Shown in pieces: positions 546 to 34,100 of a stretch of 64,000 bases of DNA. The DNA comes from Macrostomum lignano (Eukaryota), in assembly GCA_002269645.1 (NCBI GenBank), contig NIVC01002935.1, forward strand, positions 1-64,000. Reading direction: 5' to 3'. The position numbers and the translations under genes were made by a program. Below the pieces are notes generated by a model. That model made no database searches. It saw only the letters and a list, made by a program, of their open reading frames with translations, and had not been told where the DNA came from. Position 1 is the stretch's first letter; each line of letters starts with the position of its first letter.

Positions 546-589
546 GGCATGCCACTCATTGGCTTTGAGTCGGTTCGCGCGTGCAGACT

Positions 590-10600: not shown

Positions 10601-11579
10601 CGTACGAAAGAGCCGAGAATTTAAACATGAATACAGCAAGAAAAAAATTCTTCCCTGTTTGTATCTGAACTTCAAAAAAAGTGGTCTACACAACATATCG
10701 GGAATCAGAATCTGACTGATTATTTCTCAGTCTCACCCAGCATGCAGTCTCTCTGTTCGTGCCTTTCCAAATTATCTCGACATTGATTGCAGGGACCAAT
10801 ACGAGCTAAAATTAAGATAAGAGACGTTTTTCGTTTCTAGGAATTGTTTTGAAGGCCGAAATATTTCGACTAGAATGCACCAGAATTCGAACTCGCTGAC
10901 CTGGTGAAAGTCCAGTCAGACTACTGATAGTAGTAGTCCTTGCGTTATTCGCGTCACGTAGCTGCCTCTACTGTTCTTAAACTCTACTAGCGAACTTTTT
11001 TATTGCATTGTGATACAACCAGTTCCATAGTCTAATCCGTTCAATACCTGGTTTTATCAGTTTTTTTACTTTCACCTGTCTATTGTCCCTTTTTTACAGT
11101 CTTTTTTTCCTTTTCTAACCACAATAAGAGAGTAAGGTGGCTTTTATAATGCTACTGCCAGTAGAATGGAAGTGAATTCAAGTTCGCTTTGATTTGACAA
11201 CCAGCCTGTGGCCTCATTTTTCACGATTTATTCAGTTTTATTGCTTCTGTCTGTAGCTATTTTTGTGTACAATTTCTCCTTAGCTGTAATATTCTCTACT
11301 AAACCCAGCTCACGGGCATTGTGCAAATGCGCTATGCATGCCATTCTTTACTCATTCTCTTTGTTATACCCTGTCTTACTCAGATGTACCCGCTGCGGCG
11401 GCGCTTCTTCACTTTGCTCTTCAAACTGCTTATGCACTGATATTGTGGATTAGCATGCCTACACAGCTCACCACGACTGCCCAGATATTAAATGTGTCTT
11501 TATGCTATATGCCGCTGACATCTTTTCTGACACTTTGTCACTCAGATTATGTTTGTCTCACTGTTTCTCATTTAGTTGC

Positions 11580-12450
11580 TGGGCTACCAGTTTCCCAGTT
11601 GCCAGGCCAGCCTCCCAGATCCTCAGTTGCTGGGCTGGGCTAGCCTTCTAGATCCTCAGTTGCTGGGCCAGCCTCCCAAAGTGTCAGTTGCAGGGCCAGC
11701 CTCCCAGATCCTCAGTTGCTGGGCTGGGCTAGCCTTCTAGATCCTCAGTTGCTGGGCCAGTCTCCCAGAGTGTCAGTTGCTGAGCCAGCCTCCCAAAGTG
11801 TCAGTTGCTGAGCCAGCCTCCCAAAGTGTCAGTTGCTGGGCCAGCCTCCCAGAGTGTCAGTTGCTGGGCCAGCCTCCCAGAGCGTCAGTTGCTGGGCCAG
11901 CCTCCCAGATCCTCAGTTGCTGGGCCAGCCTCCCAGATCCTCAGTTGCTGGGCCAGCCTCCCAGATCCTCAGTTGCTGGGCCAGCCTCCCAGATCCCCAC
12001 TTGCAGGGCCAGCCTCCCAGATCCCCACTTGCAGGGCCAGCCTCCCAGAGTGTCAGTTGCAGGGCCAGCCTCCCAGATCCCCAGTTGTAGGGCCAGCCTC
12101 CCAGAGTGTCAGTTGCTGGGCCAGCCTCCCAGATCCCCAGTTGCAGGGCCAGCCTCCCAGATCCCCACTTGCAGGGCCAGCCTCCCAGATCCCCACTTGC
12201 AGGGCCAGCCTCCCAGAGTGTCAGTTGCTGGGCCAGCCTCCCAGAGTGTCAGTTGCTGGGCCAACCTCCCAGAGTGTCAGTTGCAGGGCCAGCCTCCCAG
12301 ATTCTCAGTTGCTGGGCCAGCCCTCAGATTCTCAGTTGCTGGGCCATCCTCCCAGAGTGTCAGTTGCTGGGCCAGCCTCCCAGAGTGTCAGTTGCTGGGC
12401 CAGCCTCCCAGAGTGTCAGTTGCTGAGCCAGCCTCCCAGATCCTCAGTTG
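11580..12450 (+). repeat. 28-bp tandem repeat, family A, copy 1
   Basis: GGGCCAGCCTCCCAGATCCTCAGTTGCT and variants, ~31 units, ending ~50 nt before the CYB561D2 ATG. Confidence 0.95.
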
Positions 12451-12500
12451 CCCCGCGCAGCCTTCAACCGCAGCCAATCTGCCCCACCCATCCCGCAGCC

Positions 12501-13163
12501 ATGGTGTCGCACTTCCTGTGCATCCTGCTGGTGGGCTTCCTGGTGTACATCGCCCAGCCGGGCAGCAGCCTATTCAGCTGGCACCCAACCCTCATGTCGG
12601 TCGCCTTCGGCCTGCTGCTGTTCCAAGGCGTGCTGTCCTTCAACCGCCAGTCGTCTTTGTTCGCTGGCAACCGGGAACGCCAGACCACCGCGCACGCCCT
12701 GCTGAACTGGGCGGCCCTGGGCGCCTCCTTAACCGGCGGCTACTTCGTGTGGCGCAGCAAGGAGGAGAAGGGCCGGCCGCACCTGACCAGCTGGCACTCT
12801 TGGATTGGCGCCCTGTGCAACATCTACCTGCTGCTGCAGTGCATCGGCGGCGTGTGCACCCGGCTGAAGCTGGGCGGAGTCCGGCCCGCTGACATGAAGC
12901 TGTACCACGCCACCAGCGGCACCTTCATGTTCACCTGCGCCTGCGCCGCCCTGGCTAGCGGCATGTGGTCCGACTGGTTCAGCAAGCAGGTGACTGGCAC
13001 AGCCTGGTACGCCTGCTTCGTGTCCGCCTTCATGCTGGGCTCCATCGTGTGCAAGCAGGTGTGCGACCACTACCTGCCCAAGCTGACCGCTCAGCAGGGG
13101 CGCGCGGAGGCTGCAAGCGGCAAGCCGAGCGGCAGGCCTGCCAGGGCTAAGAAGGAGAAGTGA
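12501..13163 (+). CDS. CYB561D2: Cytochrome b561 domain-containing protein 2-like (220 aa, single coding exon)
   Basis: MVSHFLCILLVGF...; four heme-ligand His in SLFSWHPTLM, TAHALLN, HLTSWHSWIG and KLYHATSG; multiple TM helices. D1 versus D2 cannot be firmly resolved. Confidence 0.85.
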   Translation: MVSHFLCILLVGFLVYIAQPGSSLFSWHPTLMSVAFGLLLFQGVLSFNRQSSLFAGNRERQTTAHALLNWAALGASLTGGYFVWRSKEEKGRPHLTSWHSWIGALCNIYLLLQCIGGVCTRLKLGGVRPADMKLYHATSGTFMFTCACAALASGMWSDWFSKQVTGTAWYACFVSAFMLGSIVCKQVCDHYLPKLTAQQGRAEAASGKPSGRPARAKKEK

Positions 13164-14109
13164 CCGACTGTAAAAGCATAGCTAGATTTTTCATCATGTT
13201 TCTGAATGTTGGAATTGATTAATAATCATATTGTTAGTATTGGTCACAGATACTAAAATAACTAGTCTCGTAGATAGGCCATTCAGGCATATATCCTTAG
13301 TAAAACAGCTGTCTACTTTCAGTTCAGTAGCAAAAAAGAATACATAAGCTATTTTATAAGAATAAAGGCTGCTGAAATGAACTTTGATAAGTTCAGAAGC
13401 CCAAGCTTGCAGTCGTAAACAACTTGCTAATTGGTTTAGCAATAATGTACATTAGCCAGTCCACTGAAATGTACATGGCAGCTTTAGGCTGGAATTCCGA
13501 GAAAGGCAATAAAAACTGGGGCGGGGGGCGGAGGGGGGTTGTGTGGAAAGGCGCCGTTGGAGGTTTTAAGCTTGAGGGGGGGAAAGAGCCAATAAATGAG
13601 CCTTGGCTTTAAAAAACATTAAAATTCTTCAGTTTAACTTACTACTGAACTGAAAGTAGCTGACACGCAAATGTGCCGAGTCGGAGTGGCCCATCTAGCT
13701 ATTCTAGTATCTCATGTGGTATTGATATAATTTATTAATCAAGGATTGTCTTTTTCCTGAAATTCAACAAGTCATTGGACACCCCTGCGGTAGTTTTGCT
13801 TTCCAATCCAATTCAGCCATATGCTGTTTATTTGCAATGTTTTAGCGAACAACCCGCTGGCATAAAAATGTGCTCAGCTCTTTTTTAAAATTTGTATCAA
13901 TGTTTTTAACTTTGCTTTCTGTTGGTTCTGATTCATATTGCTGAATTACTGCCATATCTGTGTCTTTTGTGCTGGGAGACATTCTTCTAATCCACTCTAT
14001 TGTATTCGTGGTCTGATTTTATGATTTTGAACAGAAAAATTTTTATAAGTCAAGAACGAGATTTCAGTTTTTTTTAATTACCATTTTCAATTTGGGTTTA
14101 ATTAGGCTA

Positions 14110-14445
14110 TATGTTTGTAAATCAGTTAATCAATAAATTAAATCTATCAATCAATCAACTAATCAATTTAATTTGTCAAATCAGTCTGGTGATCAACCTA
14201 TCAATGAAATCAGTCTGTCAATCAATCAATCAGTCAATCAACCAATCCATTGATCACTCAGTTAAATCTGTCAATCACTCAGTTGAATCTGTCAATCACT
14301 CAGTTGAATCTGTCAATCAATCAACCAATCAATCAATCAATCACTCAGTTTAATCTGTCAATCAACCAATCTGTTCAATCTGTCAATCAATCAGTCAATT
14401 AGTTCAATATGTCAATCAATCAATCTGTCAATCACTCACTCCTCA
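14110..14445. repeat. Degenerate (TCAA)n-based low-complexity repeat
   Basis: TCAATCAATCTGTCAATCACTCAG variants running up to the CAG just before the RRP15 ATG. Confidence 0.8.
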
Positions 14446-14453
14446 ATCCAGCA

Positions 14454-15308
14454 ATGCGAGTCGCCGCCTCAGCCAAGCCGTCGGCCGCTTCAAAGCAGCC
14501 GCAGGCCGCGGTTCGCGTCACGATAGAGCAGGACCTCGAAGAAGACGACAACGCGGAGGAAGTCGAGGACATCGCCAGCGACAGCGACGCCTCCTCGGAT
14601 CGGCAGAAGCCGGCCGCCGGCCAGTCGAAGGCCCGCGGCAAGCGCAAATCCGCGGAGGCGAGCGGAACGGCCGGACTGGCCAACGTCATCCGCGGCCTGC
14701 TGCTGCAGACCCGCGCCCCCGCCTGCCCCATCCTGGCCAAGGCGCTCACCGACCGCCAGCGGTTCTCCCCGGCCGCCGCCAACGCCACTGCCGACACCGG
14801 CGACGCCGCCGAGGACTCCAATGTCGATCTGGGCCGCCGGCGCAGGAAACTGACGGCTGAGAGGCGTCGTTGGCTATGCGCCGGGCGCCGCAAGCCGCTG
14901 TCGGCGCCAAACGAGCGCGAGGCGGAGCGCCAGCTGGAGCGAATCGCCTGCCGCGGAGTTGTGCAGCTGTTCAACGCCGTCAGGGCGCAGCAGCGCTCGC
15001 TGGAGTCGCGGCTGGCCGGGCGCTCGGAGGCGGGCAGGCAGCGGGTGCTGAGCTCGCTGTCGCGCGGCGACTTCCTCGACATGCTGGCCGGCCGGCGGAA
15101 GGCGACAGACGAAGCGAAATCCAAATCTGGCAACAATGAGTCTTCTTCTGCGGAAGAAGATCGGCAGCAGAAGAAGAAAGCGAAGAAGTCGTGGGGCGCC
15201 CTGTCCGAGGACTACTTGGTGAAGCCCACGCTGAGCATGAAGGACTGGGACCGCGAGTCCTCCGGCGGCTCCTCAGATGCAGAGCAGCCAATGGATGAGG
15301 ATGACTGA
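14454..15308 (+). CDS. RRP15: RRP15-like ribosome biogenesis protein (284 aa)
   Basis: Acidic N-terminus, ERQLERIACRGVVQLFNAVRAQQ, LSRGDFLDML, WGALSEDYL..MKDWD (Rrp15p signature blocks). Confidence 0.88.
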   Translation: MRVAASAKPSAASKQPQAAVRVTIEQDLEEDDNAEEVEDIASDSDASSDRQKPAAGQSKARGKRKSAEASGTAGLANVIRGLLLQTRAPACPILAKALTDRQRFSPAAANATADTGDAAEDSNVDLGRRRRKLTAERRRWLCAGRRKPLSAPNEREAERQLERIACRGVVQLFNAVRAQQRSLESRLAGRSEAGRQRVLSSLSRGDFLDMLAGRRKATDEAKSKSGNNESSSAEEDRQQKKKAKKSWGALSEDYLVKPTLSMKDWDRESSGGSSDAEQPMDEDD

Positions 15309-16459
15309 TTCTGTGTGCTCATAATCATAATCATAACCATTATTAATAAATAAATATTGGTGTTGCATTTCTTCTTGGCTTGATTTGGCTGCTTGTTGTT
15401 GTTGTTTTAAATTCATATTTTTTCAACAATGCCAAGTTTAATTAATGAAATAATTTTTGTCACTAAGGCATGATATAAGCCACTCCATTAGTTAAGGACA
15501 CCTGAGTTGATTGGAAACTTGAAAATTGGCAAACCTGACTTCTTATGTTTGTCGCAAAATCCGACAGCAATTCGCATTTAATATGCCCAATGGGAAGTAG
15601 TCTCAGTAGCAACACGATACAAAAGTTTCGGGATTGTAAAAGAAGCTGCTTTTCCAATGATGATATATAAACCAAAAGCATCGGAGATATGAAACCCTTC
15701 TGATAACAGTGATAAGGACTCAATGAGGTGATTAGATAATAAATTTAGAAAATTGATGATGAAATTTCCTCATTCACTCGTACATGGGTAAAAATTTGAT
15801 TTGGAGCAACTGTAGAATTAATTGTGTCGTGAAAGTTGAGGCTAGGCTTGCATTATAAAGCATCAGGGCTCGAATAAGATTTTCTCCAACGAAGTTTATT
15901 TGCTTGCCCCTTTAGCTCAAGGACAATAAAATTTATCGTCGCAGTTCAAATGTACATCGGCTAACCAATGCCTCTTAAGAATGTACGCAAGCGGAGAAGG
16001 ACGGCAATAAAATTAGGGGTGGGGGATTCGAGGGTAGAGAGTTGGCGCGCGCGTGGAAGACGCGGTCCGAGGGGTCGGGCTGGAGGTGGGTTGGAGGTCG
16101 TCTATGAATAAGCCAATAGAAAATCAGAGGGAGGGGATAGCATGGTTAACTATCAACCAGGCATATAATAGTTGATCAGCGTTAATTGGCGCACTCTTAA
16201 CAGATGTCCAGTCCAATGTAGCTTTAATCATCAGTTTGGTGTATCGTCTACTGACAAGTAGACAGTATCGATTGTTACGCAAAAAGCTTGCATGACGGGC
16301 AAATAGGCAGAGCTATTTTAGATAAGTAGCAATTAATTGTTAACATGAGTATAGAAAACTGCATTCTATGCTACTTAATAAGTAGTTTAAAAATATAAGT
16401 ATCCATCCCGAAATGCTTCAAGCAATAGTTTGACATGGATTTTTCATGTGAAAAAGGCC

Positions 16460-17044
16460 ATGTTTCTGGGCAAACTGAGTCTTCAGCAGGCGGCTACGGG
16501 GTCTTCCCGGCGCCAGCTGCTGTTCCTGCCGCCTCTGTCGCCGTACGATCAAATTCGCACCAGGTGGACTCGAATTATTTTCATATTCGCCCTGGTTCCC
16601 CTGCTCTACCAGGTACAGCGGGTTCAACAAATGGACGAGTCCGACAACTCTTTCAGGTAGGCACAGTTCAAATCCACAGGCTGTGTTGTGTATATATTTC
16701 CCTTTGCAAAGTTATCCACGCTACATATCGGCAATAAAACCTGTTATGAAAAGAGTACAGAAACCTGCACAGGTGCGCTGTAATTTAGCCAGCCTTATTA
16801 AATCACTGAATTCGTTCATCACAGGTCGCTCCAAAATCTGAGCCTAAACGACCGGCTGCAGACACACCTGGCCTTCAGCCAGGCCAACAGAAACAAGATG
16901 ACCTTCGTGCCGCTGGAAGTATTCGAGGGCGGCAAGAAGTTCCACCTGGAAATTCCTCTTGACGACCTGTGCGAGAAAGGATTCAGGAAAGCCAGCCAAG
17001 ACTGCTTGACTGCGGCGATGGCGGCAGCGGACTCTGATGAGTAG
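16460..17044 (+). CDS. Hypothetical 138-aa protein with one predicted TM helix (2 exons)
   Basis: join(16460..16656,16825..17044). Phase-2 junction TTC AG|gtaggc ... cacag|G TCG; 417 nt in frame to TAG; TM segment WTRIIFIFALVPLLYQV. Confidence 0.6.
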
Positions 17045-17240
17045 CTCAGGTTGAGAGGCATTGTTGCCACAGCTTTGCAGAAATAAATCCAATTATTTGT
17101 ATATTATATTAGCACTTTTGCGAATCGTCGCGTGTATGACGTTAAAATTTTCAACTTCGTTTTGTTCTCTGTTTTCCTTTTTTATTTCAAGAAATCTGTC
17201 GTAGAAATTTTCAATAATGTACATGTAGACCCCCGGGTTG

Positions 17241-17450
17241 CAAGGACTACTCAACCAGAATGGCGAGAAACTGGGTTTCTTGGAAAATTTTAGGCCGGTT
17301 TGCCGAAAAAAACTTTGTTTTTAATAGGAGGCAGCCCCAATGTTCATCTTTTGATATGACTTGCATTTCTTATAGCTCATTGATACTCAGAGTGTTTCCT
17401 TTAGAAAAATAGGATTCTTTGTTTAATTTAATTTTATATCCTACATACAA
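17241..17450 (+). mobile_element. Diverged solo left TIR of the P-like element at 18663
   Basis: CAAGGACTACTCAACCAGAATGGCGAGAAAC...ATAGGAGG...TCATCTTTTGATATG...TAGGATTCT is colinear with 18663-18900. Confidence 0.6.
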
Positions 17451-17536
17451 TGGCATATTTATTGTGCATAATAAAAAAAAATGGCACAACTCGACTCAAT
17501 ATATCTCAGTAGTATTTTTCATAGGCAGCTGCGTTT

Positions 17537-18016
17537 CTTGCACGCTGAACTGAATGGCCGTCACCCATAGACAACTCCTCTTGCACGCTGAACTGAATGG
17601 CCGTCACCCATAGACAACTCCTCTTGCACGCTGAACTGAATGCCCGTCACCCATAGACAACTCCTCTTGCACGCTGAACTGAATGCCCGTCACCCATAGA
17701 CAACTCCTCTTGCACGCTGAACTGAATGCCCGTCACCCATAGACAACTCCTCTTGCACGCTGAACTGAATGGCCGTCACCCATAGACAACTCCTCTTGCA
17801 CGCTGAACTGAATGCCCGTCACCCATAGACAACTCCTCTTGCACGCTGAACTGAATGCCCGTCACCCATAGACAACTCCTCTTGCACGCTGAACTGAATG
17901 GCCGTCACCCATAGACAACTCCTCTTGCACGCTGAACTGAATGCCCGTCACCCATAGACAACTCCTCTTGCACGCTGAACTGAATGCCCGTCACCCATAG
18001 ACAACTCCTCTTGCAC
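17537..18016. repeat. 43-bp tandem repeat containing CCATAGACAA
   Basis: CTTGCACGCTGAACTGAATGGCCGTCACCCATAGACAACTCCT, ~11 copies. Confidence 0.95.
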
Positions 18017-18493
18017 TCATGGCAAATCAAATTTTAGAATGGAGCCCGTTCTAAAGGACCGTGGATCGGTACTTTTGATTTGGCAGTCGATGAGATGCAG
18101 CAAATTTCAGAGTCTGTCGCTGTCGCTGCATTCCGATGGCAAGAATCTGGTATTAGCCGAATCGAGGAAGCAGGTAATCCCAGTTCCTGTGTCTGGAGCG
18201 GATCCCGCAAGTATGCCAATAGCTTCAATTAGGCAAGAAGGCGCGGTTGTTTCAACTATCGAGTCAGCGACAATGGTCAGTCAATCAATACATGTACCGG
18301 CTGCCACTGTTACCACGGATTCGTTTGGCAATGGCAATCGACCTATTGCGTTCAATTTCCACAGACCGCTCTACAAATGTTTTGGTTAGAGACATGGCTG
18401 ACGGAATCACTGATTTACGCTGAGTTCACTTTCTAGGAACGGTGTTGAATTTGCTGTTTATAAAAACAGTTAATTGCATGTTGAATAAATAAA

Positions 18494-19956
18494 TATAGCA
18501 TTTTGCAGCCCATTTGGGCTAACGCGCATTGAATTTAATCCAAGATACGTTTGCCAGTGTAACGGAGCTTTTGTCTATGGTAGCAAGGCTGGCACAGCAG
18601 CATTTAATTTGGTCCAACAAGCATCAATTTGGTCCAAACACTCGTGAGCCATTTGGCAAACTCAAGGACGACTTAAGTAGAAGGACGGGAAACCTCGTTT
18701 CTTAGAAAAGTTTTGAAGGCACTTTCTCCCGAAAAAATACACTACGGAGATAGGAAGTTTTCATTTTTTCAGCACAAAAATTGTTATTGCGTTTGATAGG
18801 AGGAAGATCCAGTGCTCATCTTTTGATATGTTGTGCCTTTTTTATTGCTCTATCGATATTTATAAAGCTTTTCGTTCAGAAAATTAGGATTCTATGTTAA
18901 TTTTTTATTCTACGTATATTTTCGCGTGTCTTGTGCTTGAAATACATTAGAATGCCACGGCTCGGTTCTTTAGCTTCATGAGTCTTTTTTATCATTCTTA
19001 CCCGACTGTGTAGCAAATATTTGTAACAGAGATGATAAAATAGGTTCATAAAACCAAATATTGGAGCTGTGTCATGCATTTTTGTGATTTTTAGATACAG
19101 GAAATATACGTAGAATAAAAAATTAACATAGAATCCTAATTTTCTGAACGAAAAGCTTTATAAATATCGATAGAGCAATAAAAAAGGCACAACATATCAA
19201 AAGATGAACACTGGATCTGCCTCCTATTAAACGCAATAACAATTTTTGTGCTGAAAAAATGAAAACTTCCTATCTCCGTAGTGTTTTTTTCGGGAAAAAG
19301 TGCCTTCAAAACTTTTCTAAGAAACGAGGTTTCCCGTCCTTCTACTTAAGTCGTCCTTGGGCAAACTCTTGCCTTCTCGCTACCGTCTGCGGGTTGTTGC
19401 GTACCGTTAGAATGTCAGCGTCTCTACCGACAATTTTCTGTCGCTTTTCCAGAGCTCTGCTGATAGCCGAACTCTGATAACCAACTGGAACTGTTCCTTC
19501 AACTTCTGCTGCATTTTTTTGACCGTCAACAAAGGGTTCGTCTCAACTGCATCGAGCAGCAGTTGAACCTGAGGCTCTCGAGCAACTTGCCTTGGCGATT
19601 GCCCCCCTTTCGCAGGCGATCTCTGCCGGCAGATTTTCAACGCGCTGATGGATGCTGAAAACCATCTTTTCTTTTACATTCAGCAGCCTTTGAGTGTTCA
19701 CCTCTGTCCAGTGCTTCGATCACAAACCAATGCCATTCGTTTGACAGCCTAGCATATGGTCCACAATTCTGGGGCTGATCTTGCTCCTCCGCAGCAGTTG
19801 CAAATAAGGCTATGGACTAAACTGAATGCTTGTTGGACCAAATTAAATGCCGCTGTGCCAGCCTTGCTACCATAGACAAAAGCTCCGTTACATTGGCAAA
19901 CATATCTTGGATTAAATTAAATGCGCGTTAGCCCAAATGGGCTGCAAAAAGCTATA
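18494..19956 (-). mobile_element. Non-autonomous Tc1/IS630-like element, copy 1, interrupted by a P-like insertion
   Basis: Termini TAGCATTTTGCAGCCC...GGGCTGCAAAAAGCTA with TA flanks; the interior is the reverse complement of copy 2. Confidence 0.8.
18663..19359. mobile_element. 697-bp foldback element, ~260-bp TIRs, 8-bp TSD (P-element-like)
   Basis: Starts CAAGGACGAC and ends GTCGTCCTTG; perfect TSD GGCAAACT at 18655-18662 and 19360-19367. CANRG termini with an 8-bp TSD fit the P superfamily. Confidence 0.75.
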
Positions 19957-20575
19957 TACTAATAAATATACTTTTATTTATTTTGGTCAGCGTGTAATCG
20001 ACGCAGTTGTCTATGGTCCAAACACTGGAGTTTCTTACACGCTGACCGCGTTTTGTTTAATGTGTTAAAACCATAGACAACTGCGTTTTCTACACATTGT
20101 CGGCTGATTTTCCATGCAGGAATGGCATTCTTGCACTCTTGCGTGCAGGAATGGATGTCTATGTTAAAATCTCACTGAAAAAGCATTAGGCGCAGAAATG
20201 CATTCCTGCACGGTTTTGTGCATTCCTGCACGATGAATAATCCGACAATGGGATTCCTGCACGGTCACGAGTGCGGGAATGACATCTGCATGAAGGATCC
20301 TGTGATGGTCGCAACGAATGCGGCAAAGTGTCTAGTGGCTTGCCTGAAACTGTACCTCGAGAAGCTCGCGGAATCTGTTCGAAAGTGTACACAGGCCATT
20401 GTGTCAGATCCACAGTCATCGCCGAGTCATCGCCGGACACTCACCGGCTGATATAGCTGCTGTTACTGGCCATAAGTTACTGATCGTTGATTGATATTAT
20501 GATGTTAACATAATTTATAACATATAACATATAAAATAATAAAACATGTCAGTAATTTGCTATTTTTTTTTCAAA

Positions 20576-21326
20576 TATAGCTTTTTGCAGCCCATTTGGG
20601 CTTACGCGCATTGAATTTAATCCAAGATACGTTTGCCAATGTAACGGAGCTTTTGTCTATGGTAGCAAGGCTGGCACAGCGGCATTTAATTTGGTCCAAC
20701 AAGCATCAATTTGGTCCATTTAGTTCATTTGCAGCTCAGTCCCAGAATTGTGGACCATATGCTAGGCTGTTGAACGAATGTCATTGGCTTGTGATCGAAG
20801 CACTCGACGGAGGTGAACACCCAAAGGACATTGCAAGGTTGCTGAATGTAAAAGAAAAGGTGGTTTACAGCATCCAGCAGCGCGTTGAAACTCTGCCGGC
20901 AGAGATTGCCTGCGAAAGGGTGCCAATCGCCAAGAAAAGTTGCTCGAGAGCCTCAGGTCCAACTGCTACTCGATGCAGTGGAGACGAACCCTTTGTTGAC
21001 GTTTCAGAAAATGCAGCAGAAGTTGAGGAAACAGCTCAAGTTGGTTATCAGATTTCGACTATCAGCAGAGCTCTGGAACAGCAACTGGAAATTTTTGGTA
21101 GAGACGCTGACATTCCAGCGGTGCGCAACAACCTGCAGACGGTTGAGAGAAGGCAAGAGTTTGTCCAATGGCTCACGAGTGTTTGGACCAAATTGATGCT
21201 TTTTGGACCAAATTAAATGCCGCTGTGCCAGCCTTGCTGCCATAGACAAAAGCTCCGTTACATTGGCAAACATATCTTGGATTAAATTAAATGCGCGTAA
21301 GCCCAAATGGGCTGCAAAATGCTATA
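20576..21326 (+). mobile_element. Non-autonomous Tc1/IS630-like element, copy 2 (~140-bp TIRs, HTH remnant, no DDE)
   Basis: TIRs at ~20578-20718 and ~21184-21324; internal LVIEALDGGEHPKDIARLLNVKEKVVYSI (HTH) and ISTISRAL...RNNLQTVERRQEFVQWL. Confidence 0.82.
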
Positions 21327-22328
21327 CTGTTGCTACTTTGTACTTGTAATCGTACATAAAAACTTTTCCGTGCAATGATGCTATTGCTGCACGGCATCGA
21401 TGCACGGGCCATAGACAAACAAATGTCTTGGCACGATCGCGCGCGAATTAAGCTATGGAGAGATATATGAATCTTCGATTGTATCATTTTGCTGCGCGCC
21501 CTCGGTCAAAAACATTGGTGCACTCATAGCCATTCTCTACTACATCATTGGTTTTAGGAATCTATTTTATCATTCTGTTACATATTTCGCTACATCGTCG
21601 TTAAATAGCTAAGGTTAATTAGCTGAATTACGTATTTTTTTAAACGAAAAGCGTTATACTCGTAAATATCAGAAAAATAAAAACCTTTTTTATTCGTTTT
21701 TTTTCGGCCAACTGTAGGCTGGCCGGTTTTTCATTTTTACTCCAACAAGTCTGTTCTCTGAGTAGTGATGATCCTCTACTAAAAATATGATGCAGAATGT
21801 CTATCGTTTTAAGAAGTACTTTTGATTGAAACAGTTTGGGTCTCAACCCAATTACCAGAACTAACAAGTTGACCCACTGAAGTTGAATTGACAAACAACC
21901 CTTCCTCCACAATAGACTGAACCTTCGGCTCACCCAAATAATCAGAACCCATTGTAGCTCGAATAAAACGAGCTTCTTATTCGGAATACCATCTTCCCAG
22001 CCGTTGCGCTGGAGAAGCGCAACGGCTTCCCCATTTGGGAAATTTTTCAGTTTCGGAGATGGGGTTGATGGCTTGGACAGCTGTTGGTAGGGGCGATTTC
22101 ACTCCAACCTGCCCGCGGCGCTGGCAGCCGCACCTCATCAGCTTCGCACCTCCTCGCCACCAGCACGCTACAGGTGGCTGCAGTCTGAGTTGACGGCTTG
22201 GACAGAAGCTGGTTGCTAGGGACGATTGAGCTCAACAACGGCAGCTGGATAAATTTTACTGAATGCAGGATTTCTGCCGACTGCCTCATCTCGAGCTCTC
22301 GAATCCGCAATACCGCACTGCAGCCAGC

Positions 22329-23012
22329 ATGGCAACCAGCTTCATCGCTACTCCAGTCTCCGTTCTGCTTGCAGCGGTCTGCCTGGCCCAGCTGGTCCAC
22401 TGCGAGAGCCTGTCGGGCTCCTGGCACCGCTTGAGCAGCCCGCAGTTCCTGCCTGAGAATCTGGCAGTGCGGGCTGCCAAGATTCCGAGAGGCATCATCG
22501 AGTGCCTCGACTACGGCGCCTCGACCGGCCTGCAGGTGGCCCAGTTCGACTCGGACACTCGCCAGTGCTCGCTCTTCCAATACACCGCAGTGTGCCACCT
22601 CATCGATGGACTCGCTGCTGCAGAGAGCTCGCAGTCCCGCCGCTGTGCCACATTCGCCAATGCCAGAGCCGCCAAGTTCCTCACCTTGAGCAGGAAGCTC
22701 ATGCTGGGTGTGGGCTCGAAGCTGAGGGCCGCCTGGGTGATGAGCGACGATGCGGACGCCAGCAGGAGCAACTTGGTGTGCGGCCAGACGCAGCAGTGGA
22801 TGTCGGAGAATGTGGAGTGGAGCAGCGAGGGAGCCAAGCTCGACGGAGTGTCGTCCAAGATGTGGCTGGAGAACGTGAAGCTCGTGACTGTCCGAGTGGC
22901 GGCAACGCTGCTCGAATCCTACAACTGCGACTCCACGGGGAATTGGAGCATAGGCTTCTGGGACGGCTATACTGGCGGATGGGGCCTGTACCTCGATCGC
23001 CAGGTACTATGA
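22329..23012 (+). CDS. Secreted protein with a possible divergent PAN/apple-like module (227 aa)
   Basis: Signal peptide MATSFIATPVSVLLAAVCLAQLVHC; ECLDYGASTGLQVAQFDSDTRQCSLF resembles a PAN fold; GC3-rich ORF. A further exon via CAG|gtacta at ~23004 is possible. Confidence 0.6.
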   Translation: MATSFIATPVSVLLAAVCLAQLVHCESLSGSWHRLSSPQFLPENLAVRAAKIPRGIIECLDYGASTGLQVAQFDSDTRQCSLFQYTAVCHLIDGLAAAESSQSRRCATFANARAAKFLTLSRKLMLGVGSKLRAAWVMSDDADASRSNLVCGQTQQWMSENVEWSSEGAKLDGVSSKMWLENVKLVTVRVAATLLESYNCDSTGNWSIGFWDGYTGGWGLYLDRQVL

Positions 23013-24129
23013 CAACTACCTGCCTCCCGCCTTGAACTCGTTTGACCCGAATCGATCGACCGAGTTCCCCGGACTGCCGCTGCCGTGCCGACATACCAAG
23101 TTTTTATTTGAGCAATATGAGCTATTATTACAAATACACTACGGGCAAACATGACGTGTCAGACTGGCTGTTTATATTCATTTTTTATCACCTTGTCCTG
23201 CTTATAAGAAGTATTCAGTAGACAGTCCCACATTCTTAGCTGGCGGAATTTTCAACACGTGACAGGCCGTGTCAGTTTCGTATGCCAGTAATCTACATGC
23301 GACAGGCTGTTATCATGTGAGCAGACGTCGCCGCACTTTAAGCGTGTGACTGTCCGACTGTCCGGCCTGCTCCCTCTCATCGTTCCCAGGCCGACCACAT
23401 TCCGCTTGTCAGTTAGGCAGCTTTCGGCGTTCCGCGTCTGGAGTCACTCTGGTAAATAAATCAGATAACATCCCAGTCAGGTAATTCATGCGAATCTTGC
23501 AGGGAAAAATTCTGTTATCCTGTTTGTTATCTTGTACCCCAAACAAGGAAATCGGTAGTGAATCTGACAAAATTCGCAAATTATCTTGTGATGTCATCTG
23601 GTCTATTTACCAGAGGGGTGCGCCGCTGGTCAAGAGTGGTCTAGATAGGCAAGTGCCGTCGAAGTTCAAGCATGTTACTCATTTTCTTGTACCGCACCTG
23701 CGACTATTGGAGAAAGTTTGGACTCGCGATAGGCAAATAGGGACAATAGTTTTAAAATCTCCGGTCACTCCAGTAGGTTTGTCTAGGGCCTAAACTATTT
23801 GACATGTCGCAAAAATATATAAATCCTTCAGGCTTTCTAGATAACCTGCTGGATTTGTATTCCTTCTTGATTTTGCGGGCGGGCCGAGAAACGACATTCT
23901 TCGGCCCGCGAGTCAAGCTGCATTTGCTTCAGTCTAAGTTCAGTGCAAGTCCTGATTCTCGGCCCGCAAGAGAATGGAATTTGTCTATGGCACAAAATGC
24001 AAACTGTATTTCATTTTAGCTCTGAGCCTAAAAGAGCGACTGACAAAGTAAATACGCTTGTAATTAGTCTAACTTTTTATTAAAACTGAATTTCATTAAC
24101 TCCTGACCCGAGCGTTCTGAGAACATGAT

Positions 24130-24572
24130 AGACTACTCCTGTAACGCAAGTGCTCGGTAAAAACACCCTGAACGACATGATGGCTCGGATTTCTATACAA
24201 GAGCGAATCTATCACAGACCTACACCAATCTTCGTGCTACGGTTGTCACGACACTAGCAAACAAGGGCATTTCTGCTGGCGACATTCAATGTGTTACCGG
24301 TCACAAGGCCAGAGTCGGTTCAGAGGTACACAAAGCGGATCTCGCCAGGGAAGAAGCGTCAACTGTCCGATGCTCTGACAATGGATTCTTCGCCGCCTGG
24401 TCCAATCGTTAAACGAGTCACGAGCGACGTCCCACTCCAATCGCCTGGTTTTAGCGTTGAGCGTGGCGACCCAAAAGTATCTGATACTGACTGCGAACAA
24501 AGGGACTTTAATGGAGTTCTGCCGACTGCAGTGCTAGAGAAAAATGGATCCCGTGTTCTATTTTTCCTATAA
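24130..24572 (+). mobile_element. Crypton-type tyrosine recombinase, C-terminal fragment (pseudogene)
   Basis: VLGKNTLNDMMARIS, YTN--LRATVVTTLANKGISAGDIQCVTGHK/PESVQRYTK. The HS of the NHSLR motif is deleted and there are frameshifts. Confidence 0.75.
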
Positions 24573-24809
24573 GTGAGTACCTCTGAACGCCATGTACTGT
24601 AAAGACGGCGTGGGTTGCACCACAAGACTATATTAAATCGTTACTGTTGTCCTCTTTGTAATGTTGCACTTTTAACGTTTTAAATACAATCGTTTCGGCT
24701 TCGTCTATGGCCCAGCCCGATATCGGGCAGAGAATGGACCATTTCTTAAGCAGTCTTTCCCGCAAAATCAAGCAGGAATATTTCATCACACTGTTGCAGT
24801 ACAATTGCC

Positions 24810-25728
24810 AGCATTCAGCATGTGACAGGCTGTGTGAGTCCCATATGCCAGCAATCAGCATGTGACAGGCTGTGTCAGTCCCATATGCCAGCAATCAGCA
24901 TGTGACAGGCTGTGTCAGTCCCATATGCCAGCAATCAGCATGTGACAGGCTGTCAGTCCCATATGCCAGCAATCAGCATGTGACAGGCTGTGTCAGTCCC
25001 ATATGCCAGCAATCAGCATGTGACAGGCTGTGTCAGTCCCATATGCCAGCAATCAGCATGTGACAGGCTGTGTCAGTTTCATATGCCAGCAATCAGCATG
25101 TGACAGGCTGTGTCAGTTTCATATGCCAGCAATCAGCATGTGACAGGCTGTGTCAGTTTCATATGCCAGCAATCAGCATGTGACAGGCTGTGTCAGTCCC
25201 ATATGCCAGCAATCAGCATGTGACAGGCTGTGTCAGTTTCATATGCCAGCAATCAGCATGTGACAGGCTGTGTCAGTCCCATATGCCAGCAATCAGCATG
25301 TTACAGGCTGTGTCAGTCACATATACCAGCAATCAGCATGTGACAGGCTGTGTCAGTCACATATACCAGCAATCAGCATGTGACAGGCTGTGTCAGTCAC
25401 ATATACCAACAATCAGCATGTGACAGGCTGTGTCAGTCACATATACCAGCAATCAGCATGTTACAGGCTGTGTCAGTCACATATACCAGCAATCAGCATG
25501 TGACAGGCTGTGTCAGTCACATATACCAGCAATCAGCATGTGACAGGCTGTGTCAGTCACATATACCAGCAATCAGCATGTGACAGGCTGTGTCAGTCAC
25601 ATATACCAGTAATCAGCATGTGACAGGCTGTGTCAGTCACATATACCAGCAATCAGCATGTGACAGGCTGTGTCAGTCACATATACCAGCAATCAGCATG
25701 TGACAGGCTGTGTCAGTCACATTTGCCA
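24810..25728. repeat. 40-bp tandem repeat
   Basis: GTGACAGGCTGTGTCAGTCACATATACCAGCAATCAGCAT, ~23 copies with a 5'-to-3' gradient of variants. Confidence 0.95.
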
Positions 25729-26005
25729 GCTGAGAAATGAGCATAAAGTGGAACAATGCTGGCATTTAAATCTTAGAGCCCCACATTTTTAATAATTCTG
25801 AGTGTCATTTTGTATTTATTTAGGATCGCTAAGGACAAAGAAACAATTCTTTCGTGCTGGTTAATGATAGATTTTTCTCAAGGCTGTTACTTGCTACTTT
25901 CAGTATAGTATAAAGATTATTGTCATATTAATTAATAAGATTTCTAAACTTGGGTTCGCTAGTCGCTAAATGGAGAGTCCAACTGTTCCATAGCGTGCAG
26001 CAGCT

Positions 26006-27149
26006 TCACACGCTCTGCTTCAGCAAGTTGTGGTACAGCCGGATCTTGCTGGCGGTGGACATGTCCACGAACTTGTCCCCGATGGCCACCGTCATGCCGC
26101 CAACGATGCTCGGGTCAACGCGGAACGAAACCTGCAGCTTCTGGCCGGACTTGGCGAAGCTGTTCAGCACCGACTGCAGCTCCTGGGTCTCCTTGGAGTC
26201 CAGCGGCCTGGCGGTGACCACCTCCGTTGGGACCTCGCCTTTGTGGGCGGACATGATGATGGCGAAGGAGGCCAGCACCTGGCCGCTGCGGCCCAGGCGG
26301 CCGTTCAGCCCCAGCACGTTGAACAGGTTCAGGGTGAGGTCCGACACCTTCAGGCCGGTGAGCAGCTTGGCGAATGCGGCTGACTTGGCCACCTTGTTGT
26401 ACAGCGGGTTGTTGAGGAACTCGCCCAGCCTGGGGTCCGACTTGAGCAGCTGGCTGACCTTGCCGAGGTCCTGGTCCACCTGCACGGGGCGCGGGGGGAA
26501 GTTGCGTGTGAAACAGACATTTGCATTATCAGGACGGTCTTGCAGCCTTGGCTTCAGTTTTGGTGCTACTACTACTTCATATCATGTTTGGCGCCATTTT
26601 ATATCAGGTATGGCGCCATTAAATTCAGGTCTAGCGCCATTTCAATTCAGGTCTGGCGCCATTAAATTCAGGTCTGGCGCTATTTCATACGAGCGTATCA
26701 TGTTTGGCGCCATTTCATACCATGTTTGGTGCCATTTCATATCAGGTCTGGCGCCATTAAATTCAGGTCTGGCGCTATTTCAATACAGATCTGGCGTCAT
26801 TTCATATCATGTTTGGCACCATTTCAATTCAGGTTTTGCGCCATTTCATAACAGGTCTGGCGCCATTTTAATTCAGGTCTGGCGCCATTTCAATTCAGGT
26901 CTGGCGTGAAGCCAAAAAACTCATAGCCTCCCCCCCCCTACCGTCCTGCCTGAGAGCCAGCAAAAACTGCCAATGACCGCGCAGCCTCACCTGCTCCAGC
27001 TTCTTAGACTTGACTGCCGCCGAGTACAGAGCGGTGGCGTAGCGGCCCTCCAGCCCGAAGACCTGGGTTGGCGGCACCACGAGCTGACGGAGGGCGCCGC
27101 TGGTGCTGAACTGGCGTCTCAGGATGCTGAACATGGCGCTCGAAGACAT
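26006..27149 (-). CDS. ATP5PO: Mitochondrial ATP synthase subunit O (OSCP), 2 exons, 210 aa
   Basis: complement(join(26006..26479,26991..27149)). RQFSTS presequence, [48 protein letters not shown]. An alternative ATG lies at 27134. Confidence 0.95.
26570..26907. repeat. Intronic degenerate 22-bp repeat
   Basis: GGCGCCATTTCAATTCAGGTCT variants in the ATP5PO intron. Confidence 0.85.
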
Positions 27150-27221
27150 GATGGAGCACTGGCTGCAAGATTGTACAGAAGGCCTGTTTTGACTTCAGCA
27201 ACGTCTGCTGCTTTTGATCTG

Positions 27222-27873
27222 GGAGGATATGGGAGGCTGGCCCAGCGACTGAGGATCTGGGAGGCTGGCCCAGCGACTGGGGATCTGGGAGGCTGGCCCA
27301 GCGACTGGGGATCTGGGAGGCTGGCCCAGCGACTGGGGATCTGGGAGGCTGGCCCAGCGACTGGGGATCTGGGAGGCTGGCCCAGCAACTGAGGATCTGG
27401 GAGGCTGGCCCAGCGACTGGGGATCTGGGAGGCTGGCCCAGCGACTGGGGATCTGGGAGGCTAGCCCAGCAACTGGGGATCTGGGAGGCTGGCCCAGCGA
27501 CTGGGGATCTGGGAGGCTGGCCCAGCGACTGGGGATCTGGGAGGCTGGCCCAGCGACTGGGGATCTGGGAGGCTGGCCCAGCAACTGAGGATCTGGGAGG
27601 CTGGCCCAGCAACTGAGGATTTGGGAGGCTGTTCCAGCGACTGAGGATCTGGGAGGCTGGCCCAGCAACTGAGGATCTGGGAGGCTGGCCCAGCGACTGG
27701 GGATCTGGGAGGCTGTTTCAGCGACTGAGGATCTGGGAGGCTGACCCAGCGACTGAGGATTTGGGAGGCTGGCCCAGCAATTGAGGATCTGGGAGTGGGA
27801 GGATAGCCCAGCAACTGAGGATCTGGGAGTGGGAGGCTGGCCCAGCAACTGAGGATCTGGGAGGCTGGCCCAG
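27222..27873 (-). repeat. 28-bp tandem repeat, family A, copy 2
   Basis: Reverse complement of GGGCCAGCCTCCCAGATCC(C/T)CAGT(C/T)GCT, ~23 units, ending ~70 nt before the ATP5PO ATG. Confidence 0.95.
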
Positions 27874-28289
27874 TGGCCCCCTAAAACTCGATATGCTAAG
27901 CCAAATTTAGCCAAATAAGTGAGAACCAGAAAATGTAAGCAGATAGAGTGCAAAAAGTTTAGCAGTTTAATTTGCACATGCCAGACAAATTTAATTATAA
28001 ACGCAACAGTGGGGTATCAAGCAGCAGTTAGACAAAAATGCAAAAATGCCGGGGCATCCTTTAATAGGAAAAATACCTATGTATAATTTTTTAAAATAGC
28101 TACCAATAAAGTACAAATTTTAACTGCAGCAAACGAATGAGACGAAATGCGAAGAGCGCTACTATAAGTATTAATAGTAGAATTAATGCAGAATAAGTTA
28201 CAATAACAGAGTCGCTTAGTGTGAAATAAAAATTGAAATTTGTTTGTAATTGTTAGATTTACCTCACACTGATTACAATAGGACATTTC

Positions 28290-32100: not shown

Positions 32101-33795
32101 GCCGCAGATTTCGCGTGAAGACGGCGATTTTCAATTCCGCATCGTCTTCGAAGACAACCTGGGGATTGAATTGGTTGAATTGCCTTGCATGTGCTCAGGG
32201 ATCAGCGTGATGGGAAGAGAATCAGCCCCCAGCCTCACCTGATACACGCATCCGTCATTAGCCCCAGCCTCACCTGATACACGCATCCTTCATCAGCCCC
32301 CCCAGCCTCACCTGATGCACGCATTCGTCATCAGCTCCAGCCTCACCTGATACACGCATCCGTCATCAGCCCCCCAGCCTCACCTGATGCACGCATTCGT
32401 CATCAGCTCCAGCCTCACCTGATACACGCATCCGTCATTAGCCCCCAGCCTCACCTGATACACGCATCCTTCATCAGCCCCCAGCCTCACCTGATGCACG
32501 CATTCGTCATCAGCTCCAGCCTCACCTGATACACGCATCCTTCATCAGCCCCCAGCCTCACCTGATGCACGCATTCGTCATCAGCTCCAGCCTCACCTGA
32601 TACACGCATCCGTCATTAGCCCCCAGCCTCACCTGATACACGCATCCTTCATCAGCCCCCCAGCCTCACCTGATGCACGCATTCGTCATCAGCTCCAGCC
32701 TCACCTGATACACGCATCCGTCATCAGCCCCCCAGCCTCACCTGATGCACGCATTCGTCATCAGCTCCAGCCTCACCTGATACACGCATCCGTCATCAGA
32801 CCCTAGCCTCACCTGATACACGCATCCGTCATCAGCCCCAGCCTCACCTGATACACGCATCCGTCATCAGACCCCAGCCTCACCTGATACACGCATCCGT
32901 CATCAGCCCCCAGCCTCACCTGATACACGCATCCGTCATCAGACCCCAGCCTCACCTGATGCACGCATCCGTCATCAGACCCCAGCCTCACCTGATACAC
33001 GCATCCGTCATCAGACCCTAGCCTCACCTGATACACGCATCCGTCATCAGCCCCCAGCCTCACCTGATACACGCATCCGTCATCAGACCCCAGCCTCACC
33101 TGATACACGCATCCGTCATCAGCCCCCAGCCTCACCTGATACACGCATCCGTCATCAGCCCCCAGCCTCACCTGATACACGCATCCGTCATCAGCCCCCA
33201 GCCTCACCTGATACACGCATCCGTCATCAGCCCCCAGCCTCACCTGATACACGCATCCGTCATCAGCCCCCAGCCTCACCTGATACACGCATCCGTCATC
33301 AGCCCCGGCAGCCTCCCAATCCGCCAGGGCCCCAGCAGGCGCACGCGACACCTCATCAACGTCCGTGTCGATCCGTTTTCGAATTGCAGCAACCCGAGCC
33401 TCGAACCAGCAGCCCATGGTGGGATCCCGGACATCGACTCGATCTCCCGGCTCGTACAAACTGCCAGCCAAGCAGTCCTCGTCGTGCTTGAATTCCTCGC
33501 TGGAATCGGCTGGCTCAGCATCCCGAGCTTCATCGGAATTCTCACTGTCACCCCCGGCAACCGGCTGCTGAGCGGCGAGCATCAGCTGAATGACGTCATT
33601 GATCTGCACCCCGTACTCGAACAAGGTGTGCTCGTCCACCAGCAGCTTGCCCCGAAAGAACAGCCGCTGCCGATCAACCGCAGCGTCGGGACGTGCGGCA
33701 GCGATGAGCCGACGGAGCTCCTTGACAGACGTTCGCTTTGAAATGTCCCGCAGCTGCATGGACTGGCCGTCCATTGAGCGCACGTTGATGTACAT
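29144..33795 (-). CDS. UHRF1: E3 ubiquitin ligase UHRF1 (UBL-tandem Tudor-PHD-SRA-RING), 5 exons, 786 aa
   Basis: complement(join(29144..29812,29986..30363,30759..31401,32004..32158,33280..33795)) = 2361 nt in frame. RLFFRGKLL (UBL), MGCWFEA (TTD), [13 protein letters not shown] (PHD), [20 protein letters not shown] (SRA), C3HC4 RING. Confidence 0.97.
29813..29905 (-). repeat. Triplicated splice acceptor (38-bp period) in the last UHRF1 intron
   Basis: CTGACCCCCCCGCCCGCAG|GTGGTGAAATAC occurs with exon starts at 29888, 29850 and 29812. Confidence 0.9.
30376..30600. repeat. Intronic 20/21-bp repeat
   Basis: GGTCAGAGATGCTGGATGAT(G). Confidence 0.92.
31415..31895. repeat. Intronic 33-bp repeat
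   Basis: GGGTCAGTGACACTGGGACAGGGTGGGGTCAGG. Confidence 0.95.
32222..33305 (-). repeat. 36-bp tandem array of the UHRF1 exon 1/intron 1 junction (30 donor sites)
   Basis: GGGGCTGATGACGGATGCGTGTATCAG|GTGAGGCTG; 30 copies of TCACCTGAT counted on the + strand. Confidence 0.97.
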
Positions 33796-33939
33796 AGTAG
33801 AATTTTAAGCTTATAACTAATGGTGACTCAGGTAAATATCTGGTGAGCACTACTAAATGGACGAGCATGAAGTAGTATAGACAGAAAAATATGAGACAAT
33901 CTGATGCATTCGAGAGAACTTTCGCATGAAAGGACACGA

Positions 33940-34100
33940 AGGGGGTTGTAGCCAAGTAGTGGTTAGTGTTGTACCCACTTAACTCTGCATTGCTTCAGTT
34001 CACCCAGCTGTAAAATGGGTGCCAGCATTAGCTGGGGTAATTGAGGATGTGTGGCGACCCCCATCCATGGACTGAACAGCCGTATGCAGCCTTCAGATGC
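33940..34100 (+). mobile_element. Decayed tRNA-headed SINE with a CORE/Deu-like central domain
   Basis: A-box-like GTAGCCAAGTAGTGGTTAG, then CACTTAACTCTGCATTGCTTCAGTTCACCCAGCTGTAAAATGGGT, which resembles SINE conserved central domains. The B box is missing. Confidence 0.45.

Follow-up and report, generated by a model that had tools for sequence, protein, structure and literature searches.

A 28-bp minisatellite shared by two gene spacers of Macrostomum lignano looks like discarded operon DNA in a repeat-packed genome, not a splice signal

The window analysed here is the whole stretch of 64,000 nucleotides taken from contig NIVC01002935.1 of the Macrostomum lignano assembly Mlig_3_7 (GCA_002269645.1). 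It contains two co-directional gene clusters, NHE > CYB561D2 > Rrp15 on the + strand and UHRF1-like > ATP5PO on the - strand, so that CYB561D2 and ATP5PO are, as the first-pass annotation had stated, downstream members of their clusters. Each of these two genes is preceded by an array of the same 28-bp repeat. The features of the two spacers, in window coordinates and with SL standing for spliced leader, are as follows:

11487..11492, + strand: ATTAAA, putative poly(A) signal of NHE, ~100 nt upstream of array 1
11596..12452, + strand: array 1, ~30 units of the 28-bp minisatellite
12453..12498, + strand: unique 46-nt acceptor-proximal segment ending in cccgcag, presumed to be the SL acceptor for CYB561D2 and situated 2 nt upstream of its ATG
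12501..13163, + strand: CYB561D2-like gene, intronless, 220 aa
26006..27162, - strand: ATP5PO/OSCP gene with a 13-nt 5'UTR, its start codon at 27149 and two exons, the first ending at 26991 and the second spanning 26479-26006
27163..27215, - strand: 53 nt of unique sequence with the acceptor cttgcag at the end, in which TTGCAG at 27168-27163 matches YTNCAG
27216..27873, - strand: array 2, ~23 units of the 28-bp minisatellite of array 1
27971..28070, - strand: three ATTAAA that may signal polyadenylation of the UHRF1-like gene, ~100-190 nt upstream of array 2

The CYB561 ATG at 12501 (Pfam PF03188) lies 48 nt beyond the end of array 1 (12452), and the ATP5PO/OSCP ATG at 27149 (PF00213) lies 66 nt beyond that of array 2 (27216), distances close to the ~50 and ~70 nt estimated earlier. 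From the NHE stop codon (10006) to the CYB561D2 ATG there is no canonical poly(A) hexamer other than the putative NHE signal; the three UHRF1-like hexamers have their first bases at 28065, 27995 and 27971 of the - strand. The ATP5PO intron contains a further, 22-bp array.

The report that one 28-bp repeat precedes two unrelated genes, each time in the sense orientation, was confirmed. The unit GGGCCAGCCTCCCAGATCCTCAGTTGCT has four exact matches on the + strand (11693-11977) and four on the - strand (27384-27871), and none in shuffled sequences; with up to three mismatches allowed, 22 and 19 copies are found, every one within array 1 or array 2, and a sensitive blastn search detected neither degenerate nor single copies in the rest of the window. 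TRF places array 1 at 11596-12451 (30.2 copies, 87% matches) and array 2 at 27223-27873 (22.8 copies, 91% matches). On the sense strand of its downstream gene each array reads GGGCCAGCC... and contains no stop codon, and the two form the inverted pair, 15 kb apart, that had been described. The consensus unit carries the two expected pyrimidine-CAG motifs, CCTCCCAG and CCTCAG, and array 2 terminates, as had been read from the sequence, in ...CCTCCCAGATC. The variants GAGTGTCAG and CCCCACTTGCA are private to array 1, CCCCAGTCGCT is the dominant private variant of array 2, and the unit phase at array start and end differs between the two. RNA folding of the arrays is unremarkable (z -1.2 and -0.4). 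A stretch within the array, GCCTCCCAAAGTG...GCTGGG, resembles Alu/7SL, but Rfam is empty on the array (E up to 10) and in the window (gathering score), and the resemblance was taken to be coincidental.

The repeat is a minisatellite both in its head-to-tail organization, with a unit of 28 bp (minisatellite range 10-100 bp) present in 30 and 23 copies, and in the variation of copy number and variant order between assembly copies. Array 1 has 30 units in the window versus 34 in the homologous contig L001, and the 23 units of array 2 are identical in L003 but replaced by 30 units in another order in L002, although the flanks of the assembly copies are 97-98% identical. Every assembly copy of these loci carries its array (three copies for array 2, two for array 1). 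The geometry of the inverted pair fits the suggestion that it could drive inversion; the four assembly copies share a single arrangement of the block between the arrays, with no inversion among them.

Tandem repeats are abundant in this region, where arrays of at least 150 bp cover 33% of the window. When the 27 arrays whose unit is at least 12 bp long are compared with one another (351 pairs), only arrays 1 and 2 are clearly related (z 20.6, the next best pair scoring 4.7); the statement that the other arrays are private to one site thus holds, with one pair in 351 sharing a unit. The Rrp15 ATG follows an unrelated array by 15 nt, and a GPCR ATG follows another by 204 nt. A third, diverged copy of the 28-bp family lies outside the window, inside an ARL3-like gene model or on its 3' side; it is also on the sense strand, which the detection route favoured. 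A search of the translated array against 5.8 billion proteins and 1.84 billion cluster representatives returned one true relative (P0001), the other matches being unrelated translated repeats from other organisms, and the two-unit pattern had no matches in metagenomes. Alignment scores between the flanks of the arrays are at shuffle level, and neither terminal inverted repeats nor recognisable termini were found within 700 bp of the arrays. Of the idea of a mobile minisatellite favouring gene 5' ends, dispersal of the family is supported by the third locus; the preference is not supported, given the density of arrays, the unrelated ones at the Rrp15 and GPCR starts and the location of the third copy away from a 5' end. 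In the comparison with ATP5PO leaders, one congener 5'UTR resembles unit variant A (p ~0.004); as this was one of 16 tests, an in-situ origin of the array from the ATP5PO leader was set aside.

In M. lignano, SL trans-splicing affects 30% of genes, [T/C]TNCAG is the enriched SL-acceptor motif, and repeats inflate intra-operon distances, the repeat-adjusted spacing peaking near 100 bp; such operon repeats have been regarded as neutral accumulation, and the operon criteria used were an SL-trans-spliced downstream gene and a co-directional upstream gene less than 1 kb away once repeats are subtracted (PMC8629364). The TBONE annotation cuts gene boundaries at SL-read peaks, and a name ending in 'g3' marks a gene as the third of one transcriptional unit (PMC5730564). 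The distance from the UHRF1 stop codon to the ATP5PO ATG is 1994 bp, of which ~1430 bp are arrays, leaving ~570 bp, within the 1-kb limit; from the NHE stop codon to the CYB561D2 ATG it is 2494 bp, or ~1260 bp from CDS to CDS after subtraction of 1231 bp of arrays. Measured from the putative ATTAAA, the array-subtracted spacers are ~130 nt each.

Trans-splicing of the downstream gene is evident for ATP5PO alone. Its annotated mRNA starts at 27162, directly after the unique cttgcag and 13 nt before the ATG, and the annotated partial CDS, which opens with QCSIM, starts 12 nt upstream of the ATG, immediately 3' of the same site. That site is one of only two YTNCAG motifs across the 2-kb spacer. 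The protein matches M. lignano PAA54293.1 ('BOX15_Mlig033465g3, partial') at 100% identity. Trans-splicing is thus indicated by the 5'-partial CDS at the acceptor, the g3 name and the TBONE cut, and congener transcripts carry the SL: those of three congeners read ...TTATTGCATG followed by 9-58 nt of UTR without array sequence. With the annotated 5' end and the congener transcripts as a proxy for the SL acceptor, the ATP5PO 5' end is outside the array, 53 nt downstream of it. The exact 210-aa ATP5PO protein of M. lignano has no database record, and Mlig033465, ATP5O and CYB561D2 are absent from the supplements of Grudniewska 2018. CYB561D2 would be SL-spliced at cccgcag, judging from the behaviour of the annotation pipeline, because its annotated CDS is complete at 220 aa despite a frame that remains open for 232 codons upstream, and because the same pipeline extended the ATP5PO CDS in the 5' direction. 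Its nearest homologues are 44% identical and come from an unrelated organism without the Macrostomum SL, and thus provide no orthologue evidence. On this basis array 1 stops 46 nt short of the presumed acceptor and array 2 stops 53 nt short of its own. The window contains no SL RNA genes or tRNAs.

The explanation we consider probable is that the arrays are two copies of an ordinary, fast-evolving minisatellite residing in discarded operon spacers and related by common descent, with the acceptors located downstream in unique sequence. Each array would occupy a spacer or outron, with the poly(A) signal of NHE or the UHRF1-like gene on its upstream side and the acceptor of CYB561D2 or ATP5PO ~50 nt past its downstream end, would be co-transcribed in the precursor RNA and would then be discarded, presumably as neutral sequence, the SL being joined at the unique AG past the array (cttgcag/C for ATP5PO and, presumably, cccgcag/CC for CYB561D2). 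Since trans-splicing discards all sequence upstream of the acceptor, spacer DNA would be free to expand, and only the ~50 nt adjacent to the acceptor would stay unique. The arrays probably change through slippage or unequal exchange, and the shared unit would reflect an array seed copied as DNA from one spacer to the other, over 15 kb, and also to one further locus or more; inversion-associated inverted duplication and ectopic repair are the leading candidates for the copying step. Overall, the first-pass interpretation is partly supported, its support lying in the position of both arrays in intercistronic or outron DNA of SL-trans-spliced, co-directional clusters, in the dispersal of the family and in the inverted pair.

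The common sense-strand orientation of the arrays and their near-equal distances of 46 and 53 nt fit a functional spacer element equally well.

The earlier proposal that the arrays are amplified or alternative trans-splice acceptors, whose CAGs take the SL at redundant sites, appeals to the two pyrimidine-rich CAGs per unit, to eight variant units of array 1 that create TTGCAG and so match YTNCAG, and to the sense-strand position of both arrays immediately upstream of SL-type genes. It is nevertheless highly improbable, given that [T/C]TNCAG is missing from array 2 and from the consensus unit, that the annotated ATP5PO 5' end falls downstream in unique sequence and that the orthologous mRNAs have short, array-free UTRs. 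Moreover, because the last three nucleotides of the M. lignano SL are AUG and the sense strand of the array is free of stop codons, an SL joined within the array would open long spurious reading frames. A function of another kind, with the C-rich array acting as a protein-binding platform or length spacer that separates 3'-end formation of the upstream mRNA from SL trans-splicing of the downstream one or promotes that splicing, in the manner of the C. elegans Ur element, would account for the use of the same slot twice (~100 nt past a putative poly(A) hexamer and ~50 nt before an acceptor), for the shared orientation and for the retention of the arrays in every assembly copy of their loci. We find it improbable in view of the free variation of unit number and order among near-identical copies, the unrelated arrays that fill the equivalent slot upstream of Rrp15, the third family member away from a 5' end, the lack of a structure signal in the folding scores and the published reading as neutral accumulation (PMC8629364).

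Two further explanations address how the repeat reached both spacers. A staggered-break inversion of the 15-kb block may have duplicated a breakpoint array, or the inverted arrays may mediate a recurrent inversion by which the NHE and UHRF1 clusters exchange CYB561D2 and ATP5PO. Exactly two inverted copies bound one block, their homology is limited to the array, and the edge genes both face inward, so that the clusters stay co-directional in either block orientation; yet all four assembly copies show one arrangement, the third locus requires another dispersal route, and the arrays have only the consensus unit in common, which implies that the duplication was not recent. We regard this as unlikely; such an inversion footprint is compatible with the copying step of the spacer-minisatellite explanation. 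Carriage by a transposable element with an internal minisatellite and a preference for transcribed 5' regions would explain an identical core unit at three or more unlinked or separate sites, but it is quite improbable: within 700 bp the arrays have no flanking sequence in common and neither terminal inverted repeats nor recognisable termini, they begin and end at different unit phases, and no transposase or reverse-transcriptase ORF lies next to them. Bolder still, and a long shot in our judgement, is the proposition that the inverted pair records or mediates a minisatellite-driven inversion swapping the downstream genes of two facing operons or, more broadly, that the family is selectively retained in spacers as a processing element. 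If true, the swap would yield NHE > array > ATP5PO and UHRF1 > array > CYB561D2, and spacer minisatellites would be recombination modules that reshuffle operon membership while leaving the acceptors undisturbed.

Under the preferred explanation of ordinary spacer minisatellites, the locus mainly illustrates a known property of M. lignano, the accumulation of tandem repeats in operon spacers that trans-splicing discards. To this it contributes two points, namely that the arrays stop ~50 nt before the acceptor, marking a protected acceptor region, and that neighbouring spacers can share one unit family. Stop-free arrays of this kind are a source of chimeric models among public protein sequences (P0001, P0170), and such arrays should be masked in the design of promoter and operon reporter constructs for M. 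lignano, a transgenic model.

The human INS and HRAS1 minisatellites lie in promoters and modulate transcription; like them, the arrays described here are polymorphic minisatellites immediately upstream of a gene, but they appear to lie in a transcribed spacer that is removed by trans-splicing. In the Drosophila melanogaster group, the staggered-break model explains inverted duplications at inversion breakpoints, and here too two inverted copies of a short segment bound a block without other homology; unlike the Drosophila breakpoint duplications, the repeat has a third copy elsewhere, and one arrangement is seen in four assembly copies. The Ur element of C. elegans is short, single and U-rich and has a demonstrated function. 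Operon intercistronic regions and outrons were reportedly treated by Lasda and Blumenthal in 2011. As with the C. elegans intercistronic region, its Ur element and outrons, our arrays are found between an upstream poly(A) site and a downstream acceptor, in sequence discarded after processing; in contrast to Ur, they are 650-860 bp long, C-rich and hypervariable, and any function is putative. A parallel in anatomy exists within M. lignano itself, where repeat-inflated operon spacers have been described in bulk, without mention of a unit family common to two spacers or of a ~50-nt gap between array and acceptor (Ustyantsev & Berezikov 2021, PMC8629364). In those spacers tandem repeats lie between co-directional SL-trans-spliced genes, and subtraction of the repeats restores a spacing of ~100 nt, an anatomy that the two spacers analysed here appear to share.

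Two gene-abutting arrays with a common unit are the sole unusual feature here. The 28-mer GGGCCAGCCTCCCAGATCCTCAGTTGCT has four exact copies on the + strand (11693-11977) and four on the - strand (27384-27871), and none in shuffles of the window. With up to three mismatches allowed, 22 and 19 copies are found, none outside the two arrays, and sensitive blastn detects no degenerate or solo units elsewhere in the window. Array 1 stops 48 nt upstream of the start codon (12501) of the intronless cytochrome b561 gene CYB561D2 and array 2 stops 66 nt upstream of that of ATP5PO/OSCP (27149), both reading in the same direction relative to the sense strand of the downstream gene. Among 27 arrays with units of at least 12 bp (351 pairs), only these two share a unit (z 20.6; runner-up 4.7). 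Since copy counts, positions, orientation and the pairwise comparison agree, the description in the first-pass annotation (exact copies at two gene starts, in shared orientation, with unit sharing unique to the pair) is accurate.

Features of the two spacers and of the neighbouring Rrp15 spacer:
10006 (+): end of the Na/H-exchanger (NHE) gene
11487 (+): ATTAAA, putative poly(A) signal, sole canonical hexamer before the b561 ATG
11596-12451 (+): array 1 by TRF, 30.2 copies, 87% matches
11596-12452 (+): array 1; a unique 46-nt segment with cccgcag at its 3' end, followed by CC, separates it from the ATG
14118-14438: (TCAA)n-like array, ending 15 nt before the Rrp15 ATG at 14454
29144 (-): end of the UHRF1-like gene
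28065, 27995, 27971 (-): three ATTAAA hexamers, putative poly(A) signals
27223-27873 (-): array 2 by TRF, 22.8 copies, 91% matches
27873-27216 (-): array 2; a unique 53-nt segment with cttgcag at its 3' end, followed by a 13-nt leader, separates it from the ATG
27164-27163 (-): AG of the cttgcag acceptor

The M. lignano spliced leader (SL) is 35 nt long with the 3' end ...TTATTGCATG, and its acceptors are enriched for the motif [T/C]TNCAG, or YTNCAG (PMC8629364). The annotation placed gene boundaries by SL-read peaks and by poly(A) reads, and its MligNNNNNN.gK names mark genes inside one transcriptional unit (PMC5730564). M. lignano PAA54293.1, 'BOX15_Mlig033465g3, partial', matches the spliced ATP5PO protein at 100% identity, and by this g3 suffix ATP5PO is the third gene of a polycistronic unit. 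Its NCBI CDS is 5'-partial in two duplicate assembly copies of the region (L002 and L003), with first residues QCSIM, and therefore begins 12 nt before the ATG, directly 3' of cttgcag. Because gene boundaries were cut at SL-read peaks, this annotated start identifies the position directly after cttgcag as the SL addition site. The whole 2-kb ATP5PO spacer has two YTNCAG motifs, one being TTGCAG at 27168-27163; array 2 and the consensus unit have none, and in array 1 the motif is created by eight variant units only (…GTTGCAGGG…). The ATP5PO start after a unique cttgcag and the absence of YTNCAG from array 2 argue against the proposal that the arrays are an amplified trans-splice acceptor.

Three ATP5PO orthologue transcripts from Logan assemblies (88%, 75% and 70% identity) open with the 3' portion of the Macrostomum SL, followed by leaders of 58, 35 and 9 nt, respectively, free of array sequence; in one of the three, the SL's own AUG serves as the start codon. 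Positions 25-59 of a congener's ATP5PO transcript (L006), within its 5'UTR (CCAACCCCCAGT-CCAGCCT), resemble array-2 unit variant A with a 7-nt gap (p ~0.004, uncorrected, 16 tests), a weak hint that the 28-bp unit may derive from the ATP5PO leader region.

The b561 reading frame is open for 232 codons upstream, across array 1. The annotated product is nevertheless complete at 220 aa, and the ATP5PO CDS from the same pipeline reaches the 5' end of its transcript; this indirect evidence from annotation implies that the b561 mRNA starts <3 nt before the ATG, between cccgcag and CC. Array 1 has no sense-strand stop and lies in frame with CYB561D2, producing a 452-aa ORF (11805-13163, +). A public ARL3-like M. 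lignano protein model (P0001) runs through such an array, and another model (P0170) strings sense and antisense ORFs of the array 1/CYB561D2 region into a 2684-aa chimera; both the read-through and the chained model are annotation artefacts. CYB561D2 itself (12501-13163) is intact on NIVC01002935.1 yet missing from its called genes, its annotation being confined to the duplicate contig NIVC01000451.1.

An exact protein match assigns the b561 gene to assembly GCA_002269645.1, and the Rrp15 match falls on contig NIVC01002935.1 at coordinates equal to those of the window, which is therefore bases 1-64000 of this contig. Three further copies of the region, 97-98% identical to the window, are present in the same redundant assembly (L001, NIVC01000451; L002, NIVC01001156; L003, NIVC01000876). 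The window copy of array 1 comprises 30 units and the L001 copy 34; the two are alike in the 5' part and different in the 3' part. Array 2 of L003 matches that of the window exactly, and in L002 the array comprises 30 units in another higher-order pattern between conserved unique flanks. The modal unit is all that the two arrays have in common: GAGTGTCAG and CCCCACTTGCA are private variants of array 1 and CCCCAGTCGCT of array 2, and start and stop phases within the unit differ. Similarity between their 700-bp upstream flanks, or between their downstream segments, does not exceed that of shuffles, and neither array has inverted termini. A transposon origin appears improbable, as no transposon features, shared flanks or inverted termini were found. 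Shuffled sequence folds as well as array RNA, and a functional spacer element appears improbable. An array 1 variant, GCCTCCCAAAGTG...GCTG(A/G)G (e.g. 11782-11837), resembles the antisense strand of primate Alu/7SL; since Rfam finds nothing in it, the likeness is probably coincidental, and it could set off false repeat or contamination flags.

Simple and tandem repeats constitute 15% of the M. lignano genome, and in the window 33% of the sequence lies in 29 arrays of 150 bp or longer, which are found chiefly in introns and intercistronic spacers. One gene beyond CYB561D2, the equivalent slot before Rrp15 is filled by an unrelated (TCAA)n-like family, and another unrelated array ends 204 nt before a GPCR ATG (60556 vs 60760). 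It is thus usual in this region for a downstream operon gene to have an array adjoining its start. Upstream of the clusters' first genes (NHE, UHRF1-like, ZC2HC1-like; regions 1-3100 and 33800-39400) no arrays were found. Where the host-gene strand is known (at 45-54 kb, as inferred from coiled-coil ORFs and GC3), the sense strand is richer in C than G in 15 arrays, G-rich in four and neutral in two, which suggests that minisatellite strand asymmetry is linked to transcription.

The UHRF1-like gene contains a 36-bp array of ~30 units (32159-33330, -), also present in L002 and L003. The tandemly amplified unit spans an exon-intron boundary, with 24 nt from the end of the exon and 12 nt from the start of its intron, and therefore every unit carries the consensus 5' splice site TATCAG/GTGAGG; this is a real amplified splice site. 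The unit equals 12 codons and stays in frame for ~13 units (ORF 32809-33795), so that a later donor, if used, would insert 12-residue repeats into the protein; the true next exon begins after ccccag at 32159 (VVFEDD...). A Tc1/mariner-like remnant lies at 20596-21306 (near-identical ORF starts facing on opposite strands; weak HTH_29 match), and a non-LTR retrotransposon fragment at 36384-36716 (weak zf-RVT match) in the AT-rich sequence that separates UHRF1 from ZC2HC1.

Translated searches of protein collections returned one true relative of the array, the UniRef ARL3-like model, whose C-terminus runs on into a divergent form of the repeat (…LSCWASLPDAQLLGQPPRSSVAG…). The ARL part of this model has no match in the window, and therefore the family is dispersed. 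The third copy lies within or 3' of the ARL3-like gene, away from its 5' end; the detection route favours finding it in the sense orientation, since read-through is possible on the stop-free strand only. Of the earlier suggestion of a mobile minisatellite favouring 5' ends, dispersal is thus supported and the preference is not supported, given this third location and the local norm of array-abutted starts.

A common unit requires DNA-level copying between the two spacers and to the third locus. An inversion-associated inverted duplication fits as the copying event for arrays 1 and 2, which flank a 15-kb block in inverted orientation, its two edge genes facing inward; the arrangement, however, is the same in all four assembly copies. 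Later recombination between the arrays also fits and, if true, would exchange CYB561D2 and ATP5PO between the NHE and UHRF1-like clusters. Of the idea that the inverted pair could drive inversion, the geometry stands, but no alternative arrangement occurs among the four copies.

The best-supported reading, which we consider likely, is a fast-evolving minisatellite located in discarded spacer RNA. It would be tolerated there because trans-splicing strips everything 5' of the acceptor, array included; the ~50 nt adjoining the acceptor remain unique, presumably since this stretch holds the branch point and pyrimidine tract. After subtraction of the array, the hexamer-to-acceptor distance is ~130 nt in both spacers, with poly(A) sites placed from hexamers alone. 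This spacing matches the published mode for M. lignano operons, in which repeats lengthen intergenic distances and the spacing minus repeats peaks near 100 bp (PMC8629364).
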